This document shows, in pieces, positions 7,812 through 58,588 of a stretch of 64,000 nucleotides of DNA. The first letter of the stretch is position 1. Each line of letters starts with the position of its first letter. The notes beneath the pieces are model-generated. The model had not been told where the DNA came from. It searched no databases and saw only the letters and a program-made list of their open reading frames with translations. The position numbers and the translations under genes were made by a program. Origin of the DNA: Trichosphaerium sp. ATCC 40318 (Eukaryota; Protista; Tubulinea); NCBI GenBank assembly GCA_038496445.1, contig JALMLS010000009.1, positions 62,001 through 126,000 of the forward strand, given 5' to 3'.

Positions 7812-8811
7812 ATGTCGCTGATGGTAATTTAGTGTACCAATTTTACAGCCAGAGGTCACGTTTTACGGCTTGCCAACTGAAATTCAACAACATATTCTTT
7901 CATATCTCAGACAATCGCGTTATAAAGCAGCCCAGACGTGTAAGCTATTATCAATGATCATACACAATCGCCTCGGATATGAAAAGGTGTTCATCAAAGA
8001 AAACCAAATAGACTCTCTAATACAGTACCCTGGCATTCTTCAAAACACTTTAATATCCGTTCACTCACCCAGAGACTCAGCACAAATTAAAAAACTATCT
8101 GGATCATCCTACCTGAATTTATCACGTGCTCTTTTGAATGATGAAGCGATAGAAGCTTTGGTAGGAGTACACTATCTAGATCTAAGCAGTTCATATGGTT
8201 TCAGCAACTCTAGTATTGCAAAACTCAATGGTGTTCATACAATTAAGCTTGATCACACAAAAGTAACAGATGAAGGTGTTAAGGCCTTAGCTGGGGTTCA
8301 CAATATTTCGTTGAGCATGACGGCAGTAGGAGACGATGGTATCAAAGCTCTGGCTGGTGTTCACACCATAAACCTTCGTAGAAATACTGTAACAGATAAA
8401 GGAGTGATGACTTTAGCAGGTGTGCATATGATCGATTTGAGAGCTACTTTTGTTACTGATGAAGGTGTTATACCTCTTGCTGGAGTACACACAATCAAGT
8501 TGTCAAGCACGAAAGTAACCGATAGGGGCGTAATAGCGCTTGCTGGAGTGCATACAATTTGGCTTGATTGTACTTCTGTCACTGACAAAGGAGTAAAAGC
8601 ACTTGCAGGGGTCAACACAATACGTCTTGGAAAGACAGCTGTTACTATGGACGGCATTAGCGCTTTAGTTGGAATAGAATCAATAAGGCTGCCTGTATGC
8701 ACACCAGACTTTTTGGACCAATACAAAGCATGGCTATCAACATGGAATAACAACTTCAAGGTACAATTGAATCGTACAAACAGTGTTTTCATGGTGCGCC
8801 TTGTGCATTAA
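7812..8811 (+). CDS. F-box + 21-aa LRR ('LAGVHTI') protein
   Basis: F-box-like LPTEIQQHILSYL followed by about 9 repeats of VTDxGVxALAGVHTIxL. The start needs a 25-nt intron (7824-7848). Confidence 0.8.
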
Positions 8812-11408: not shown

Positions 11409-12220
11409 ATGCTCAAATCTCCCCAAACTATCCTGTCCAACGTACGGAATCCTGTTAATCGTATCTAACAACGCACGAATAGGGATTCACTGATGATCGC
11501 CGCCTATTACACCTTCCGGTTGAGCTTCAGCTCAATATTATCGAGTTGGGCTGGTCTGCGTGTTTAAATTGGCCACTTCTTTCGAAACAGGCAGCAACGA
11601 CAATAAGGTTTGATGGCGATATGAAAAAGCACGGAAAATGGGTTCGAAGAGTCAAGAACAAAGTTGTAGAGCAAGAGTATTGGAACCATGGTCTAAAACA
11701 TGGAGAGTATAATCATTGGCGCTCCAATGGTCAATTGTATAAGCAATATGCTTATGTCGATGGTGAGATAGAAGGAGAATATAAAGAGTGGTATGAATGG
11801 AAGAGTAGGGAGAGACAGTTTAGTCGCTTCGATTTCGAGGAGGGCTTAAATTACCCAAGTTTCTATAACGCACGTGTTTTTTACGGATGCAATGAACAAG
11901 AGAAAGAAAACGAGGATGAAAGCCAATTGCGGATCCAGTGTAATTACATAAAGGGTAAAAAAGAAGGAGAATATAAGGAGTGGTATAAAAATGGACAATT
12001 AAAGGTCCAATGTAGATACATCAATGGTGAGTTTGAAGGAGAATATAAATATTGGCATGAAAATGCACAATTACGATGCCGCTGTAACTACATCAATGGT
12101 GAGTTTGAAGGGGAATATAAGGAGTGGTATAAAAATGGACAATTAATGATCCAATGTACGCCTACATCAAGGGCAAAAAGTAGGAGAATACAAAACAGTG
12201 GAATAAATATGGAACTTTGA
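11409..12220 (+). CDS. F-box-like + MORN-variant repeat protein
   Basis: One 5' intron, then LLHLPVELQLNII and 24-aa EGEYKEWYKNGQL repeats. The last repeat is frameshifted. Confidence 0.75.
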
Positions 12221-26176: not shown

Positions 26177-27965
26177 TCAAGAGATAGTACAACGCTTTTC
26201 TTGAACTGGTTCAGGCATTGGTTGGTTATAGCGTTTCGGTGGAGGTGGTTCCGGTACATCCATACCCAAAGTTTCACGGGCATATCTAAAAAATTATGTG
26301 AGAAACAGAACATAAAAAAAAACATACTTTCGAAGCTGTGCAAGAAACCCATTGTTAGGACCTAAATTACAAATTATTAATCTATGTAACTCTGCGAAAG
26401 CATAAAAAACCCAGACGTACGAACACGTGGACGCCTCTCTTTGATATACTCAAGTACATCATCAGGTGTCTTATTCATTTTCTTCATCAAATAAGCAGCT
26501 ACAATTGTAGCACTTCTCGATACTCTAAACAAAATGATGAACTCTAGGTATCATATACGTTGTAAACAAATAACTCACCCTGCTTGACAATGAACCAGTA
26601 TACCTCCATCATTGATACCATTCTCTATAATGGCAAACGTTTCTTCGAACAAGCTTATTAAATCCTGTGAATCTAGAGCAAACAACAATAGTCAATCTCC
26701 GAAATGTCGTGCACGTGTACTTTAATAAATTGTCAGAGTAAAAAATAGTACCTACATCGTTCACATCTATACGATTATAGGTGAACAAGTCAGGATAATA
26801 CGGTTTGACAAAGCTGACATTCATAGCACTCAAAACATGTTTAATTTTTCCCTTTAGAAAATGTCTATTTGCAGATGCATCTAGAGAACCCAAATACAAC
26901 CCTATAACGTAAAAACAAGTTATAAAAATAGATCTACAGCATTGACTCACCTGGTAGAATCTCATCAACTAGTTGGTCGTCGTACATAATAAAAAGAGAT
27001 GGATTTTTTGATACAACAACCTTAGCCTAAAGGGTGGAGTTTAATACTAGTAAGCTATAATAAAAACAGTCTTATGTCATAGCTCTCTAACCTACCTCTT
27101 CAACAAAGCATATTGGGTTATTACAAATGCTTAAACTACTCAAATTGGGCATTGACACTATCTGATTTGGAAATGTGGTAAAGTCGTTTGATCTAGATCA
27201 TTAAATTACGTTATGTCACTACAGAGTACTCTTTTTTTTAATGAAAAGCTATTTTTAAACGTACTCCAGTTTCAAGTTTTGTAATAGTTTAAGATTTGAG
27301 AATGAATCAGGAAGACTGTCGATGTAATTAAGGTGTGCGTCTAACACTTTAAGATTTGTCAAACTTCCAATAGATTCAGGTAAACTGTGTATCTCAGTCT
27401 GTGCTATATACAACGTAGATAGGTTAGAGAGCTGTCCTAGAGTTTCTGGAATGACATTAAACGCGTTTTCGCTAACTTGAAGGTCTGTCAACGAAGTAAT
27501 CTCGAAGACAACTTCAGGTATTGTTTTAAACTTGTTGTTTGTGATATAAAGTGTTTGTAGTTTCTTCAAGTTTGACATCGATCCTGGTAATTCAGAGAGA
27601 TGATTTAAAGATAATCGTAACCCTTCTAAGTTTGTTAAAGATCCTATTTCGTCTGGAAGTACTTTGATGTTGTTTCTATTTGCGGTAAGACTTTCTAGAT
27701 GATGACCAAAGGAAAAAGCGTACTTTGAGAGAAAAAGGTGCGTTAGAGATTTCAGCGAGAAAAGAAAGCTTGGGAGTATCTCTATTTTATTGCAAAACGC
27801 TCTCAGGGTATGTAGCGACTTGAATTCGGCGAGTGAAGCAGGTAAACAAGTAATTGCGTTCCATTCAGCTGTAATCTCTTCTAACTCCTCTGTAGATGCT
27901 CCTGCAAGCTTCTTTGCAAAGCCATTGGTATCTAACTCTATATTTGCTACTCTTAACTTCTTCAT
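26177..27965 (-). CDS. LRR + dual-specificity phosphatase with C-terminal CaaX
   Basis: 23-aa LRRs (LPxxIGxLxNL), LYLGS, VHCQAGVSRSATIV and RPNNGF. Ends KRCTIS*. Confidence 0.88.
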
Positions 27966-28095
27966 GTGCGCCAGAAATAGTTCTATTTGTTTGCGTTGTG
28001 GTAAAACAATTTCATGAAAAAACAAACCGTTTTGATAAATTTAATAAACTGGTACGCTATCCCAAGTGGATATTATAAAATACACTATGTATTGA

Positions 28096-29424
28096 TTATA
28101 CATTACATTCGAGATCTTCTCTAGCTTCTATCAATGCTTGTTTATCATCATCACTCAAAGGTATGCCGAAAACATCAAGGAACATTAGTTCTTTACATTG
28201 ATGGATAAGATGCAAGACGCCTTTAAAAGTAGCCTGTGTGACCCTAACATAAACGTTACACTTTCGCTAGTACCTTAAATATGAATTTACGTACATAGTA
28301 ATACGTAAGGACCTAAGCCCCGTCAAATGCTTTGCAATTGAAGCTAGCCCTTTATCTGTAATATATTTACAATGAGATACATCAAGCTGTCTCAAATGAA
28401 CACAACGTCTTGTTATAAATTCAACCATCGTATCAGTAACCCTTCAAAACAAATCAGCATCAATAAAATAAAAAAACAAAAGTTACAGACACTCACGTGG
28501 CAAAACACCCTTTTAATGAAAGTACCCTCAAATGAGGACACTTATTGCCAATCAACCTAACCAAGTTAATACATTACTAATGTAAGCCTTGAATAGGCAT
28601 TGTGCAATTTCTAACCTTAGTATACTATTGCTATTAGCAAGGTCTGCAAGATCAAGTGCTTCTATTTGTGGCACCATGAACTTGCGTAGAATTTTATTGT
28701 TGAGTTTGTTTCCTAGATTCCTCTTTACTTGCTCAAATATTCGTCCTACTGCATTGCCATCTTGTATAGCTTCTATAATCTACGTTGCAAGTTAACATAC
28801 AACAGTATAGTACAGCAGTCGCCGTCTGAAAACGTTAAGCAAACGCACGCTTGGGTCAAGTGTTTTAATTTGCGCAGCTAATCTCAGTATTATCATATTT
28901 TGAAGTGAGGGCACGCTACAATCAGGTACAACGTCATCCATGATTGTATCACCAACATCAAGATGGTTAAACGACTTTCCCACGCTCTACAAAGTAGTTA
29001 GTCCCAGTATTGTATAGAAGGTACGTACTAGGGAGAAAGAGTGAGCGTATGTGGCTCTGTACAAAATGTCAGTTTACAAGTTCGTTAAATAATTTCTGTC
29101 GCCGTTTCCAGGCGTACCGTACGAACTCCAGGCCATAAAACTCCTTTAACTCTACATTTATTATTTTTTGATTTGAAGCAGTTATACAATCGTACCAAAT
29201 CGTTTCTTGTCATCAGTAAATGATGTAGAGTTAATTAAACACCCTTTTATAACATCTGGTGAGTATGTTTTGCTCAAAATCTTGTAAATTAGCTCTATTT
29301 GTATCCAACCGCCAATATATACGTCTAGTTTGAGTCTTTCGAGCGGTGCATGTCTCAACAAAAAGCATAGCTTTTTAGCCAACGCAATATCCTCACCTCC
29401 TTTTTTACACCCTCTTTCGCACAT
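28096..29424 (-). CDS. Tpt1/KptA N-terminal RNA lobe fused to AMN1/FBXL-type LRRs
   Basis: LCFLLRH...GGWIQI...KKRFELKE...VRATYAHS, followed by Cys-containing LRRs (LRQLDVSHCKYITDKGL). Confidence 0.75.
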
Positions 29425-30367
29425 GTGGAAGCTACTAGTACCACTGGTATCAAATTCTGTTCTTTAATTCTGAAAATTGAGTGTTTTCTACAACTTTTCA
29501 CAGAAACCATGTTCAACGTGACGGCGTAGGTAAGGACGTCATTGCAGTGGTGTCATTTTTTTACTCGATCAGCAAGTAGAGATACGTTACTTTTTGTTCC
29601 GTCAAAGATAACCATCCGACGCTACCAGTCAGTGTTTTTATCAACAAAGTAAAACTTGTGCAAGTTTTCTCAACTACAACCCTTACCAACTACGTATCTA
29701 ACCGCATGTAATTGCCCTGGGTACAATGGTGAGTACACAAATTCAAGATGGCGAACTTCAACGTTTATTTGCGTGACTTCATGTTAACGCACGTTTGTTG
29801 CAATGTTGCGCTGCGAATATCGTTGTAGTGTCACGTTAGTACTTTACCACTGCTCGTGACGTATGTTAGTAAATTAACAAATATTTTGCACGTTACCTTG
29901 TGCATCATGAATATTCACGCCTGCATAAGAAATAAAAAGGTAGTAGAATTAATTACACCAAAAATGTTCTCAAAAGCTGTAGCATGTTCGTAAACACACG
30001 AGACAATTAGTTTTACGCATCTTTTAAAATCACCTGTCAAAGTGTCGGACACCAAAGCCGTAATTATCGGCAAGAGCTCTAAAATGGTCGATATATAATT
30101 TAAGAGCTCTCTCTGTAGGAGAAACTACCATCTCCCTTTACAAAAGAGGAAAAGATTCACATAGAAGTAGGCTTGTGGCCGCAAAAATTTATGCCGCAAC
30201 ATTCGGGTTGTTCGCAAAAGTTGTCCCCTTATTTGCAAGGCGTGAAGCGATGACGTTACGCAGACTTATAACACTAGGTTTGTTATACTACAGTACGTAG
30301 TTAAACCATTTATCGTGTATTTGAAGCACGTGCCTAGTTTGATACTTCTCTTTAATAAAATTCAGTA

Positions 30368-32554
30368 CATTTATGCTATTATCGTTCTCATAGTACTTGT
30401 AGCAACCCTTGTGTCGTGTAATGAACATGATATTGATTGCAATATCGATTGGGAACCTTTAATCACAGCCTGTAAGCCAGTACTGTCTCAAATAGAGAAC
30501 GCAACAAGACTGGTACATTTTATTTTAAAATGCAAATTAAGTTATTTTGCTCTGTAACCACACATGTTCAAACGATTTTCTAGCCTATTGGAGACGTTGA
30601 ACCAATCCCAACCAAGGATTCTTCTTACCTCATATCAACAGGTAGAATAGAAGGTCTTTGTAAATCAGATGATTCTTGTGGTGTTCTTTTTCATAGGCTT
30701 CACCGACACATTTCTTCTTGCACGAATAGTTTTAACAACGGCTTGATAGACGACGGTTATACCATAAAAAAGCCTGAAACTGACCTAAGTTACATAAGTT
30801 TCCTTCGGGAGCAATGGTAACCTAAACAAAGTTCCGGTTTGCATGTTTTTCTGATTTTTTTTCAAAGTGTTGATAGACGATCACATCATACAGTGTGTTC
30901 CGATACTTCTCTAGAACGTTTTCAGAGTATATCAGATATTGTAGTATCCGAGTGTATCGTGAAAAAGAATATTTTGAAAGAAGGATGCTCAGTTGATTGC
31001 TCAGAAGCGTTGAAGTCTTTTTCCAATATCGCAAGGTTTTGTATTCGCCACCAACATGTTAGAAGTACTCTCGAAAGCTTTAAGCCAATCATTGAACGAC
31101 GAAGAATATCATGTGATGCACTTGAAAAATGTGATGCACTTAGAAGAACAGTTCATCAACTTGGTGATACGTGCAAAGTTGTTTTGCTTGGTGGTGTATG
31201 TTCAAACTCCTAGCTCTACAAGACAGTTTGTTGATACTTTTTCTAGACATGCGAAAGTACTTGCAAGGAATCAAGGGTATCTTTGCGTAGATATATTAAC
31301 TATTGCGCTCATCAAAATGCGAACAACGTACTGACCAGACTGACAACAGAAAACATAGAAATGCTAAGAAAGATTGACAACGGATGTAATATTAAAAGGC
31401 GTGGATCTGTGGATATTTCACATGAAGACGGTGGGAGAGTTTTACGGGCAATAGTAACACGACCAATAGATTTCCCTGGAGTATTTGTTTCCGACGTACG
31501 CAACTATGAGCTATACACTCTTTTGAATCTTTCTCATTTTTTTCGCATTATTTCGGGTTTTACCTTGCTTTATCGGCTAATGGTAACTTTTAGTGCGTCT
31601 CTCATGTCAAGACAAGGTTTGATTCAACGAAGGCACCTTTCGTAGAGTGTAATTTTAGAGGTTGCGAGAATAATACGGAGACAAAGATGGAGATGATATT
31701 TGATCGTGTTTCGGATTGTGAAGAAAGTAACGTGGCTGATCCTGATTCTTGTATTGATACTTTTGATCTTGTGGTTGATGGATCAAGTACAGAATCTTTA
31801 GACATTGGTAGAGGTCAGGTAGACGCTGATAATCATACTGGAGAGCAAAGCGAAGACGCTGTTGATATTGAAACATCCGTACAAATATTGAATGTACAAG
31901 AAAGTTGTCAGATTGGATTTATGCAGAAAGCCGCTGCTACAAACGCAACTGATGTTGATGATATTCAAGTTAATGCTGGTATTGAGAGTATATTATTTCT
32001 ACACCATTGTGTACACGCACGTGCAAACATTACAACGTAAGTGCCCTTCTAACGCTTCAATATCTCCTGGTTTCCACTGATCGATTTCTAATTCTTTTTT
32101 CTTAAGGAGGGTCCTATCTGTTCAAGTACGATGTAGCACAGATTTTGGAGAACTTGAAGACGACCCAGAAAATAGCGGATTTGTTCGCATGACTTGTGGT
32201 TGTGAAGGTATTTTTAGAGCTAAAAAAACAGCAAGATGCACAACTTGGCAGGGTGATTCTAGTATTGTTCCTGTAGATATATCATTGTCTTCTAAGCTTA
32301 GCGCAAGTGTCGAAGACTATCACCCTGTAGGAGACACGATGTTTCAAAGAAGAGTTCTAGCAAGACTTCCAATTGGATTGGAATGTGAAACGCTGGAATG
32401 GGATCCATCTTTATCTCTTAACGAACAAACAATAGCTAGTGAAATACTAAACTCTGAATCACCTACAGCTGCACCATCTTCATCGACTGGATATATTACC
32501 TTATTATCAAGTTGTTTTTTCATTGTATTTTTTGAGTTGATACTCATGATGTAA
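30368..32554 (+). CDS. Cys-rich putative secreted/GPI-anchored hypothetical protein (start uncertain)
   Basis: Hydrophobic N-terminal stretch, Cys-rich exons, acidic low-complexity region, and a small-residue spacer followed by a hydrophobic C-terminus. Confidence 0.5.
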
Positions 32555-39826: not shown

Positions 39827-40890
39827 TCAACTTGAGTTGTTGTTCTGTATATATCTTTTAACGAACCTCCTAAAACTCTTTTTAGATGGTTTCAGCCAAT
39901 CCAAAGTCAATGATTCTTTAGCACTTGGTCTCTTAGATACAACAGGATCTAACAATCTTTTCAAACAAGAAACTTGGCATCCTGAAATAGGATATTGTCT
40001 TTCAATATATTTCCAATCAAATCCGCCTTTCTCCCTTACTAACAATAAACTCTTCCTGAATTTATCAATATCATCTTCTTCAACACGCAGTGGGTACTTC
40101 TTAGCCAATAAAACAAAGCATAGAATGCCTACGGACCAAATATCGAATTTTTCGTTATATCCTTTTCCAATGAACGCTTCCGGTGGTACAAACTCTGGTG
40201 ATCCGTTTAGAGACAGTAAGCCTGTTTTGGCTCTTTCAATTTTAGTCGAGAAGCCAAAATCTGCCACTTTGATTGTGTTATCATTTGATACTAGTATATT
40301 GGATAGTTTTATATCTAAATAGGAGTAGTTTAGTAAAAACAAGCTACCACCGCGTGGAGTAATAAAAAAAACCGTTTGGTTGGAAAAGTGATGATCTTTT
40401 TTCTCCGCTCTCGTACCATTATGTATCCAACCAGCTGCGTGAAGGTGTTGTAAACCCTTAAGGGTTTGTTGTATGATAGTCCTAACCAATGGCTGAGGGA
40501 GGAGATGTCGGGATGATTCTACCAAATCTAATACACTTCGTTTACAACGCTCAAGTACCAAGAAACAAGACTCATCTAATTCAACGATCAGAAATCAGAA
40601 AACTGCGCAAAGAAAAAAAGATTGAATTTATGCGTTGACTAGCGAATATTCGTACCATCTGTGCTGCAGTCGTATAGTTTCAGTATATTACTGTGTTTTA
40701 CAGATTTGAGGACAGTTATTTCCTCATTTATAAGCCCTTTTGATTCCTTTACAAACGTTGGGTTGAAAACCTTGATCGCTACAATATTTTTCGTAGTTTT
40801 ATCCTTTGCTTCGTATACTTTCGAGGATTTACCAGCTGCTATATCATTAATTACTTTGTAGCGTTTTTTATACACCAACTGTGTTGTCAT
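39827..40890 (-). CDS. Ser/Thr protein kinase
   Basis: VAIK, HNDIKLSN, DFG, GSPEFVPPE and DIWSVG. Confidence 0.88.
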
Positions 40891-47200: not shown

Positions 47201-48928
47201 ACAACAGGGATCAGATAATGTGGTAAAGGAGAAAGTACATCGGACAGAAGTCTAAAATGTCACTTTTAGGAGAAGAGAACGTTGTGTTCAATTTAGAACA
47301 ACTAAAAAAGTAACTCGTTCTTTCCTACAAAGATTTTACTTTTCAGGTGATTATGAAGACCAATTAGGCATTGCATTCTTTTTTGAAATAAAAGCACGTG
47401 TATTTTGATATTTCCATTACTTTCACGTGATAACATTATTTGAATTAAAGGTGCTTGAATTTCCTTCGGGTGAAAACTTGCCTCATTCAGGTATGCTCTC
47501 AGTGGGCCTCACTGCTGATTCTCATTGGCGTGGTAATCTTGGATGTCATAGTGGAGAAGTATCATATTGTTCTAAGACAGGAAAAGCTTACTTTGGAAAA
47601 CGTACAAAACAACAAAACACTACTCCAACAAATCAAAAACTATCTAATATTTTTTACTTTGCAGCAAAAGAAGGAGTTCCATACGGTCCTAACTTCACAG
47701 TTGGAGATGTTGTCGGATGTGGCGTTTTGACTACTGGAGAGGTCTTCTTTACTCTAAATAATACCTTCCTTATGACCGTACCTTCATTTAAAGTACATCC
47801 AAGACAAACAATGGTCGCATGCGTGTCATCATTAGCAAGAGTTAAATTTTCTTTTAATCTTTCTGGACCTTTTATTTTTGAACAATATAGAAAGATGATG
47901 TTATCTATCAAATCACCTTTAATACCTGCTGTTAATACTATTGCTCTTGATCTTTTTTTGGATAAAAACATAATAAGAATGGTATGCGCTGAACTCACAC
48001 GGCTCTTTATCGATAGAACAGAGTTATATCTGGCAACTACTTTCATCGAAGGTGTTGCAATGATGGGTACTACCTCGTCTTTTTTCTTCCTCCCTGGTTT
48101 TTCTTATTTTTTTCTTGGTCTTGTAATTTTTTTGTTTGTTCCGCTTTTCTGAGTTTTTTTATAGATCCAAATACGGCTAAAAATATATGCGAAGCGTGCC
48201 CGAGGTTATGGACAACTATGCAAACACATAAGGACCCTGTAATTATACGTCAAAGGGAGCTTTGCAAAAGACAATTTGCAAAAGTTGGATTCCCTGTAAT
48301 ACCATCAGGAGTGTGGAGCTCGCAAGATAATATTCGACCACATGACCCTAATACACATAACCTTCGCAGATCTGTATCGGCAGACAGCTATACTGAATCT
48401 GGTAACAGAGGAAGCCCTTCAATGTCCCGAATGAGGCATGCCAACTCACAAATCTCAATGCGCCATGACATCCACCCTAGCCATCCTATTGTTTCTACTA
48501 CTATTGCAACTTCTAATGATGCTATAAGACATCATCGTGGTACTTCTAATAGTCATCAACAACAGAATCCAATAAGGTTATATGGATGTAAGAAAGGAAC
48601 AAGAAAGTGGGTTAGTTTTACGATATATGAAAGATCTGAAAGAGAAGTTAAGGCGTCATATGCCAGAAAATTAGGTTTAGATTGGACTCAAATCGTTTGC
48701 GTACGAAAACATCTTCCGTTGAATTCACCTTTGAAGTTTCTTTGAAAACTTGTTTTTTTTTTGTTTATCCCATTCTACGTCTTTCCCAAAACAACGTATT
48801 GTTGAGTTCTCATTTTTCTTACGAGTTTTCCAAAGGTTGAGATGAAACGTGGTGATTTGTTTCAAAAACTATCAGGCAACTCTTTTTCGATGCTAGAATC
48901 AGGAGCTTCTTTGTATTTTGTAATGTAA
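44256..48928 (+). CDS. NEK-like kinase + helical region + SPRY domain protein
   Basis: IGKGAFGTVY, ALK, IVHRDIKPAN, DLG, GTLPYFAPE, DIWALG, then SPRY motifs FFEIKVL, YGPNFTVGDVVGCGV and VFFTLN. Confidence 0.85.
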
Positions 48929-49073: not shown

Positions 49074-50113
49074 ATGTCAATAAACAAAAAACTAGCCCTG
49101 AATCAAAGGTATGTTCAATATACATGTCGATATTGTTCTAAAACACATCAACCAGTACACAGTCAAGAACGCGAATCGCAGAGCTACCTACAGAGATTTT
49201 AGCGCATATTCTTAGTTTTACTGAAATTAAAGCGCGATTAGCAGCGTGTCTTACCTGCGGTATATTTGCTTCCATTATTCATAATATTATTGGATATGTA
49301 AGAATCATTGTTTACACAATTGATCAAGCAAAAGTACTTTGTAAACAACCTGGTGTCCTTAAACATACAAGAATCGAAATACGCTGTGTTGAATTTCCTG
49401 ACTTGGTTGTAAACAAACTTGCTGGTGCTTGCACCACTATCCTTTCCCATTGTCAAGATATAACAGATATAGGCATCAAAGCCCTTGCTGGTGTTCACAC
49501 CATTGATCTTTGCTATTGCCAAAGTATTACTGATGAAGGCATTAAGGCGATCGCTGGTGTTCATACCATTACCCTTAGTGGTTGCCGAAGCATTACTGAT
49601 GAAGGCATCAAGGCACTCACTGGTGTTCATACCATCTACCTTAACTATTGCCAAAATATTACTGATGAAGGCATCAAGGCGATCGCTGGTGTTCATACCA
49701 TTACCCTTAGTGGTTGTCGAAACATTACTGATGAAGGCATCAAGGCACTCACTGGTGTTCACACCATTCATCTTGAATCTTGCCAAAGCGTTACTGATGA
49801 AGGCATCAAGGCACTCACTGGTGTTCACACCATAGATCTTGGATATTGCCAAAGCATTACTGACGAAGGCATTATGGCGATCGCTGGTGTTCATACCATT
49901 AACCTCGGTGGTTGTCAAAATATTACTGATGAAGGTATTAAGGCGCTCGCTGGTGTTCATACCATTAACCTTAGTGATTGCCAAAGCATTACTGATGAAG
50001 GCATCAAAGCGCTTGCTGGCGTTCATACCATCTACCTTAACGATTGCCAAAGCATTACTGGTGAATGCGTCAAAGCTCTTGCTGGTGCTTACAAGATACA
50101 CCGTAGAATTTAG
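49074..50113 (+). CDS. F-box + 22-aa LRR protein, paralog of 7812-8811
   Basis: One 5' intron, ELPTEILAHILSF and about 10 repeats of CQSITDEGIKALAGVHTIxL. Confidence 0.85.
49450..50090 (+). repeat. 66-bp coding tandem repeat array
   Basis: attactgatgaaggcatcaaggc...gctggtgttcataccat recurs every 66 bp at high identity. Confidence 0.9.
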
Positions 50114-57688: not shown

Positions 57689-58588
57689 ATGTCTGCTATA
57701 TTGAGAGCACAAGGAGCTGTAGTTTTAGCGAATTTCACAGTGCTTGGCCTCTTTGGTGCGCCACTAAACGCCGCTAAAAGAATACAGCAGCTCGCATACG
57801 GTCCTTTAGAGCCATTACAATCTGTCTTTTTTACACACGGCGCGATTGGATTTTACACGGCAATATATCCGTCATTAATAAGCTCTATCCCTGTCGTACG
57901 CGCGAAATACACGTATATTTGAGTTATCTTTAATTATTGCGTTGACACTTACTTTAACGAAAAAATTAGGTTGCTTTACGAACAACAGCACTCCATTACG
58001 CCATAAAATATAAGGTATCGCCAAATAAAACGCTCACGAGCTTCCTTACTTGTGCGTATTTTTTAAAAAAAGTGTAACTTCGCACGCCGTTAATTTTGCT
58101 TAGCCGTAGCGTCTTCCGTGGCAGCTGTGCCTGCGTTCTGTTTACAAACAAGATTAATAGAAAACTTACTCGCGCCTGACGCGTCATTCACATCAGAAAC
58201 AGGTCTCTACCACAATCTATTCAACGGCTACATACCGCTGGTGTTAAAATATTGGCTTCATAATGTCATTCAGTATCAAGTTTTTGAGGTAGTAAGGAAA
58301 GCATTCAAGCCAGGAGAGACCGGAACATACGTGACAGCATTCTTGTCATCTATTGTAGCATGTGTGGTAACTCTACCTTTTGAAACGATAGCGGCACACA
58401 TGTGTTCTTTTGCTGGACGTCATTATGGTCCTTTGTCTTTAGTATCATGTGTAAATGACATTTATGAAAAAAGTGGAATCTGGGGCTTTTTTGCTGGATT
58501 TGTACCGGAGCTTTTATATGTTGGGTTTAATACACTATCACACTTTGAATTATACATGATGTACAAGAAACTTCTCGACAAGAAATGA
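57689..58588 (+). CDS. Divergent mitochondrial carrier (SLC25)
   Basis: Three-fold repeat with degenerate PxD/ExxK/R motifs (APLNAAK, VPAFCLQTR, LPFETIAAH) and GIWGFFAGFVP. Confidence 0.75.

Follow-up and report, generated by a model that had tools for sequence, protein, structure and literature searches.

The only known form of Tpt1 (KptA, TRPT1) is an enzyme of two lobes, which erases RNA 2′-phosphates or caps 5′-phosphates with ADP-ribose. Its RNA lobe has a winged-helix fold and works by flipping out a single nucleotide, whose 2′-phosphate it then clamps. In CthTpt1, residues 1–85 form the RNA lobe and residues 86–182 the nicotinamide adenine dinucleotide (NAD+) lobe, with an essential tetrad of Arg18, His19, Arg68, and Arg121; the yeast tetrad is R23, H24, R71 (in DKQRF), and R138, so that the third Arg falls within a DKxRF motif and the fourth within the NAD+ lobe (PMC6333775). 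In PhoTpt1, a crevice of the RNA lobe takes up the flipped-out junction nucleoside, and there Lys7, Arg14, His15, Lys60, Arg62, and Tyr74 together sandwich the flipped base and coordinate the 2′-phosphate; the phosphate itself is held by Arg14, Lys60, Arg62, and Tyr74 plus Arg133 of the other lobe (PMC10622864). Here we describe a gene of Trichosphaerium sp. ATCC 40318, contained in a 64-kb stretch of contig JALMLS010000009.1 (positions 62,001–126,000, hereafter the window), whose product, half-Tpt1-LRR, combines a Tpt1-like RNA lobe with leucine-rich repeats (LRRs) in place of the NAD+ lobe.

The gene occupies 29424–28096 on the minus strand, as translation and transcript contigs both indicate and as an initial annotation, made from the letters of the window, had placed it. 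Reverse-complement reading and translation resolve eight exons. From the ATG at 29424 to the TAA at 28098–28096, the reading frame is uninterrupted over 945 nucleotides (nt), equal to 315 amino acids, and an in-frame stop lies 14 codons before the ATG. The seven introns measure 44, 61, 42, 69, 59, 55, and 51 nt, all of them GT..AG. The open reading frames (ORFs) suggested a 21-nt intron in exon 4, following "...YYTV", but the contigs show the 69-nt intron 28848–28780 instead, and the shorter one was rejected. The protein opens with MCERGC (29407–29424, minus strand); the two Cys in these first six residues, ahead of the Tpt1-like part, may mark a lipidation or metal site or may mean nothing.

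Among public contigs compared with 27000–30500, run X3 contributes a spliced contig of 942 nt and run X4 one of 934 nt; they start at 29451 or 29445 and extend to 28131. All seven splice junctions are listed for each run. The X4 contig comprises all eight exon pieces; the X3 listing lacks the 28-nt piece of exon 3, yet the X3 contig spans that exon. Because the contigs cover every junction, the Tpt1-like and LRR halves reside on one mRNA, and separate transcripts for the two, the outcome that the initial annotation had named as fatal to its reading, are not what these contigs show. Both runs derive from one sample, and their contigs, assembled de novo, inform on neither transcript ends nor levels. 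Additional coverage comes from run X2, of another study and under another organism label, with a contig linking exons 5-6-7, and from RNA run X1, which covers exon 1 and 35 nt of 5′ untranslated region (UTR). The X3 and X4 contigs both stop at exactly 28131, 33 nt short of the stop codon and at a site with no GT; this end is probably a break in the assembly graph, caused by a variant or low coverage, and not a splice site. The window and the contigs differ at four positions, three synonymous and one encoding Ile112Val, a pattern compatible with purifying selection, although the numbers are tiny.

We compared the protein with known families exon by exon, and the figures for the RNA lobe therefore rest on exon 1 (76 residues) alone. 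PF01885 aligns over model positions 2–64 of 177 (expect value, E, 3.8e-4; 21 bits), under the gathering score of 26 because just one third of the model is present. Four NCBIfam RNA 2′-phosphotransferase models also match, always over their first ~70 positions (best E 5.6e-5), and pairwise BLASTP with Escherichia coli KptA (NC_000913) gives 33% identity over 61 residues (E 7e-6), pairing LLRH with VLRH and DDKKRF with SDKKRF. A profile of our own, built from 11 KptA homologues, was run against 1545 stop-to-stop segments covering six frames of the whole window; exon 1 was its sole match (E 3.3e-5, with the runner-up segment at E 3), and the match therefore exceeds chance. In an ESM-Atlas feature search, the three clusters nearest to exon 1 were all PF01885 (0.90, 0.89, and 0.88), and four of six weak phmmer matches in the PDB were Tpt1 structures. 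Pfam, NCBIfam, BLASTP, and the KptA profile thus agree with the N-terminal Tpt1/KptA match proposed earlier.

The remainder of the lobe is supplied by two micro-exons, which contribute E-LKEFYGLEFV-R-ATYAHSFSL, a strand followed by the hinge motif. The hinge motif reads IRAVQGHS in KptA, IRALYGHS in C. thermocellum Tpt1, and IRARYGHS in T. kodakarensis KptA. After micro-exon splicing, LLRH, DDKKRF, and VRATYAHS are all present, and positions K17, L19, L23, R24, H25, P27, G39, W40, K73, R75, and F76 fall in invariant columns of a 30-sequence alignment. By these sequence criteria, exons 1–3 (residues 1–97) are a complete Tpt1/KptA RNA lobe. The La motif does not conserve the active-site residues specific to Tpt1 (PMC6333775); they are kept here, and the module therefore derives from Tpt1, not La.

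Of the NAD+ lobe, with its HGT and VHLS motifs, there is no trace: exons 4–8 contain no PF01885, and in six frames of the 64-kb window exon 1 is all that the full-length KptA profile detects. Both this absence and Pfam coverage confined to the N-terminal half had been anticipated by the initial annotation. Because the lobe is absent, phosphotransferase or ADP-ribosyltransferase chemistry is impossible, and the protein, as predicted from its sequence, cannot be an enzyme of either kind.

The ligand pocket of the RNA lobe is conserved. Motif alignment equates K17, R24, H25, K73, R75, and Y91 with PhoTpt1 Lys7, Arg14, His15, Lys60, Arg62, and Tyr74, so that all six residues are kept. The essential tetrad fares differently from what was first proposed: the members in LLRH and KKRF are present, as claimed, whereas the Arg of VRATYAHS, counted as the fourth, is no tetrad member (PMC6333775). 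Three of four are retained (R24, H25, and R75); the fourth (CthTpt1 R121, yeast R138) is a residue of the NAD+ lobe and is lost with it. In the Runella enzyme RslTpt1, the two lobes are dynamically independent, and nicotinamide adenine dinucleotide phosphate (NADP+), a mimic of the 2′-phosphate, binds the N-terminal lobe alone (PMC8464070). Ligand binding by an isolated lobe is therefore plausible by analogy. Published structures show 2′-phosphate RNA, a 5′-phosphate end, and NADP+ or coenzyme A (CoA) each in the Tpt1 RNA lobe.

The C-terminal half begins with an acidic linker (residues 98–122, net charge −4). Residues 123 to ~180, helical by eye, contain SLQNMIILRL and LDPSIIEAI, and from about residue 182 (IEALDL) there follow ~5 repeats of 26 residues with the pattern CxxLxxLxLxxCxxITD. 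Exon 7 matches LRR_6 in Pfam (E 9.4e-7) and, in the PDB, FBXL2 (2.9e-17) and FBXL17 (7e-14), followed by KDM2A/B, TIR1, COI1, FBXL5, and RAD7; these matches bear out the FBXL-like, Cys-containing LRRs of the initial annotation. Exon 8 has no Pfam match and shows weak RNI-type LRR resemblance (NLRP9) in the PDB search. The pattern of the helical cap, L-x-x-x-[C/I]-x-x-x-L ... L-[P/D]-P-x-I ... h-T/N-[DN]-x-x-L ... P-x-h-x-x-LDL, is presumably most like an AMN1-type N-cap, a likeness that we treat as a lead only.

Within this cap, VPSLQNMIILRLA is present at residues 123–135, where it had been likened to a BC-box/F-box-type adaptor helix. The likeness is not confirmed. Exons 4 and 5 show no PF00646, PF12937, SOCS-box, or other Pfam family even at E ≤10, and neither exon, searched separately, has a PDB sequence match; as a positive control, the same Pfam library detects the F-box-like domain of the ORF at 7870–8811 (E 1.9e-5). 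The BC-box consensus is [STP]-L-x-x-x-[CSA]-x-x-x-[AILV], paired with a cullin box. SLQNMIILRL fits it except for an Ile at the Cys/Ala/Ser position.

Taken together, the conserved pocket, the missing catalytic lobe, and the repeat type suggest that half-Tpt1-LRR is a non-catalytic adaptor between a protein partner and an RNA or nucleotide with a phosphate mark, a reading of the sequence to which we give an even chance. The N-terminal lobe would bind phosphate-marked RNA or a 2′/3′-phosphorylated nucleotide, recognizing a flipped nucleotide that bears a 2′-phosphate or a related phosphate mark. Behind the acidic linker of ~25 residues, the cap and the FBXL/AMN1-type Cys LRRs would form a protein–protein interaction surface. 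A partner bound to this LRR solenoid could thereby be brought together with the RNA, or the RNA could be sequestered. The absent NAD+ lobe and the conserved pocket residues fit the non-catalytic reader of the initial annotation; the cullin-type ligase that it had attached to the reader finds no F-box or SOCS-box in exons 4–5.

Several observations weigh against this adaptor reading. The exon 3/4 junction that unites the two halves is seen in one sample (two runs) only. In the lobe itself, the Ser of the S-K motif (Ser6) is replaced by Ala16, and QGHS/YGHS has become YAHS. The missing fourth tetrad Arg is also a 2′-phosphate contact in the enzyme, and affinity may therefore be low; the N-terminal lobe of RslTpt1 binds NADP+ with a dissociation constant of just ~1 mM (PMC8464070). 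AlphaFold2 models of exon 1 were too poor to use, with a predicted local distance difference test (pLDDT) score of 45.7 for the exon alone and 52.4 with a 30-row KptA alignment. In a Foldseek search with the alignment-guided model, CthTpt1 took the top two ranks, followed by La and, further down, by Ape and Tko Tpt1; every match was non-significant (E ≥0.5), and the ranking, biased by the KptA alignment, is not evidence. Finally, searches with exon 1 found no orthologue of half-Tpt1-LRR.

The searches for relatives differ in what they can say. An exhaustive HMMER search of exon 1 against 1.84 billion representative proteins returned none at E ≤0.001; canonical Tpt1s reach just ~20 bits against this 76-residue exon, and the zero therefore denotes a lack of close relatives, not of the family. 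A word-index protein search with exon 1, restricted to 42–133 residues, gave no candidates and is uninformative at such lengths, and exon 1 scans of metagenome and viral contigs confirmed no locus. A KptA N-lobe query retrieved 1259 proteins; among the 120 listed, all carried PF01885 only. Within the window, no exon has a paralogue, generic LRR similarity aside.

The gene may have been built by exon shuffling, as we propose from its sequence. The boundary between Tpt1-derived and LRR-derived parts coincides with the exon 3/4 intron and with the natural hinge of the enzyme, a protease-sensitive segment in Tpt1 (PMC10622864). A 5′ partial TPT1 copy of three exons could have been spliced onto a downstream AMN1/FBXL-like gene through the former 5′ UTR of the latter, whose old start may be Met113, an internal codon at 28939–28941 in exon 4 directly ahead of the cap helix. 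At least two more LRR_6 genes and an LRR_8 neighbour lie in the window, and LRR partners for such shuffling are therefore abundant.

The same history admits a more modest outcome, in which a young chimera carries a Tpt1 part without specific ligand function. That part would be a neutral extension at the 5′ end of an AMN1/FBXL-like LRR protein, or a basic appendage to it that binds RNA generically, and the protein may also be translated from Met113. The position of Met113, the two further LRR_6 genes as shuffling partners, and the empty exon 1 search, by which the gene may be lineage-specific, all speak for it. We nevertheless judge it unlikely: the family-invariant and ligand-contact positions are intact apart from the Ser-to-Ala16 change, two micro-exons are spliced precisely with the frame kept, and the few variants seen are all synonymous or conservative.

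A cullin-RING substrate receptor, in which the SLQNMIILRL helix would dock Elongin C or Skp1 and the N-terminal lobe would recruit 2′-phosphorylated or damaged RNA, or a ribonucleoprotein, for ubiquitylation, strikes us as unlikely to a similar degree. Its LRR type is shared with FBXL2, FBXL17, KDM2, TIR1, and RAD7, mostly cullin-ligase receptors, and the spacing S-L-Q-x-x-x-x-x-x-L, followed 8–10 residues on by L-D-P-S-I-I-E-A-I, bears a loose resemblance to a BC box with a Cul2 box. However, exons 4–5 yield no F-box, SOCS-box, or BC-box profile match under conditions that reveal the F-box at 7870–8811, and the cullin-ligase link is unsupported for that reason; the Ile stands where a BC box needs a small residue. 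In receptors, moreover, it is normally the LRRs that bind the substrate, and the N-terminal lobe would then be a second, unusual specificity module.

Improbable, in our estimate, is a small-molecule sensor whose pocket binds a free 2′/3′-phosphorylated adenine nucleotide (NADP+, 2′,5′-ADP, pAp, or CoA) and thereby regulates binding by the LRRs. Such ligands have been seen in the RNA lobe, but they are taken to mimic the RNA junction, the measured NADP+ affinity of ~1 mM is weak (PMC8464070), and the sequence offers no distinction between this activity and RNA binding. That the locus is two adjacent genes or a chimeric assembly is very improbable and already largely refuted: the exon 3–exon 4 junction rests on de novo contigs from two runs of one sample, but these ~940-nt contigs cross seven GT..AG junctions on contiguous genomic DNA with 315 codons open, and the X2 study independently confirms the exon 5-6-7 junctions.

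If half-Tpt1-LRR is indeed an adaptor that reads RNA 2′-phosphate marks, it would be the first protein found in nature to read internal RNA 2′-phosphate rather than erase it, and these marks would carry information in the cells concerned. Whether the 2′-phosphate has a role beyond fungal and plant transfer RNA splicing is a question raised repeatedly in Tpt1 papers. A reader would also serve as a ready-made affinity reagent, give a genetic handle on whether a eukaryote reads such marks, and exemplify clearly how domain-level exon shuffling can divide an enzyme at the hinge. Should the lobe prove an inert appendage, the gene would add just one more lineage-specific fusion to the many of an amoeba genome. 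A broader proposition, which we hold to be doubtful, is that amoebae have turned the Tpt1 RNA lobe into a portable, non-catalytic reader of RNA 2′-phosphate or related marks, here attached to an LRR scaffold through which it may serve a ubiquitin-ligase or signalling complex.

Table 1. Exons, motif codons, and other features of the window (nt positions count from the first letter of the window; residue numbers refer to half-Tpt1-LRR)
Feature	Positions	Strand	Reading	Basis
Exon 1	29196–29424	−	ATG at 29424; residues 1–76 plus 1 nt; predicted helices and first strands of Tpt1 RNA lobe	Translation, PF01885, NCBIfam, KptA BLASTP, contigs
Codons R24-H25 (LLRH)	29350–29355	−	Tetrad members 1 and 2	Invariant columns; role from PMC6333775
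Codons K73-K74-R75 (DDKKRF)	29200–29208	−	Conserved Lys and third tetrad Arg (stacks on flipped junction base)	Alignments; equivalent to PhoTpt1 Lys60, Arg62 (PMC10622864)
Exon 2 (34-nt micro-exon)	29118–29151	−	Residues 77–88, codons split at both ends; loop and strand preceding V-R-A motif	Junctions 29196/29151 and 29118/29056 (X3, X4), frame check
Exon 3 (28-nt micro-exon)	29029–29056	−	Completes residue 88, then residues 89–97; ATYAHSFSL, end of RNA lobe	Exon piece in X4; flanking junctions in X3 and X4
Codon Y91	29047–29049	−	Aligns with Tyr contacting the 2′-phosphate	PhoTpt1 Tyr74 (PMC10622864)
Exon 4	28849–28986	−	Residues 98–143; acidic linker (98–122), then first cap helix	Junction 28849/28779 from contigs
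SLQNMIILRL (residues 124–133)	28879–28908	−	BC-box/F-box-like motif of the initial annotation	Sequence reading; no profile support
Exon 5	28616–28779	−	Residues 144–197 plus 2 nt of codon 198; remaining helical cap and first LRR (strand IEALDL, 28648–28665)	Contigs, translation
Exon 6	28497–28556	−	LRR 2 (CPHLRVLSLKGC)	Contigs including run X2 (different study), translation
Exon 7	28295–28441	−	LRRs 3–4, FBXL-type with cysteines	LRR_6 and PDB FBXL2 matches
Exon 8	28096–28243	−	Last LRR and C-terminal cap; TAA 28096–28098	Translation; weak RNI-type LRR resemblance
Exon-sized ORF, MORN	11546–12220	+		1.4e-10
Exon-sized ORF, protein kinase	39830–40561	−		1.7e-30
Exon-sized ORF, SPRY	47427–48152	+		1.4e-5
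Exon-sized ORF, mitochondrial carrier	58118–58588	+		6e-13

The kinase, carrier, MORN, and SPRY ORFs of Table 1 are ordinary genes of a eukaryote whose compact genome has short introns, and an Rfam scan of the window found no family at gathering score. Other LRR genes occur on both sides of half-Tpt1-LRR. The ORF at 7870–8811 (plus strand) encodes a bona fide F-box/LRR protein, its F-box-like domain (E 1.9e-5) followed by ~10 repeats of 24 residues, GVHxIxLxxTxVTDxGVxAL (LRR_6, 3e-15). A strong LRR_6 repeat protein (5e-39) is encoded at 49403–50113 (plus strand); the minus-strand ORF that overlaps it, 49241–50101, has a borderline KH_5 match (3e-6) with no stretch of its own and is probably an antisense artefact of the repeats. 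Immediately downstream of half-Tpt1-LRR, at 27255–28025 on the minus strand, is a classical LRR_8/LRR_14 gene whose first in-frame ATG lies near 27965, ~130 nt beyond the half-Tpt1 stop. It appears to be a separate gene and has a small contig of its own in X3; the half-Tpt1 contigs end before the half-Tpt1 stop and so do not bear on read-through.

Literature comparison agrees with the initial annotation that the architecture is uncharacterized: full-text searches found neither a lobe-only Tpt1 nor a Tpt1–LRR fusion, and we know of no described protein that joins half of Tpt1 to LRRs. Among the closest systems is Tpt1/KptA/TRPT1 itself (PF01885; E. coli KptA, C. thermocellum Tpt1 6E3A, and P. 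horikoshii Tpt1), with which residues 1–97 share the LRHxP, GW, DKKRF, and [IV]RAxY[GA]HS motifs, together with three tetrad residues and the Lys and Tyr contacts for the junction nucleotide and its 2′-phosphate. Unlike these enzymes, half-Tpt1-LRR has LRRs where they have the NAD+ lobe (HGT, VHLS, and the fourth tetrad Arg), Ala in place of the S-K motif Ser, and a KKRF-to-VRA loop ~2 residues longer than that of KptA.

On the C-terminal side, the F-box/LRR proteins FBXL2 and FBXL17 share 26-residue LRRs with cysteines, whereas half-Tpt1-LRR has no detectable F-box and ~5 repeats against at least 10. Short CC-LRR proteins of the AMN1 type are, we presume, similar in form, with an LRR part of ~200 residues, a helix-led N-cap, L-[PD]-P-x-I, a first repeat ending in LDL, and no F-box. 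AMN1 proteins, to our knowledge, are without a nucleic-acid-binding domain. A parallel for the fusion as a whole is Schizosaccharomyces pombe Tpt1-Yae1 and the "larger-size" fungal Tpt1 clade, in which a eukaryotic Tpt1 sequence is likewise joined to an unrelated C-terminal module; those proteins keep the complete two-lobe catalytic domain (PMC12810181), whereas half-Tpt1-LRR keeps the RNA lobe only.

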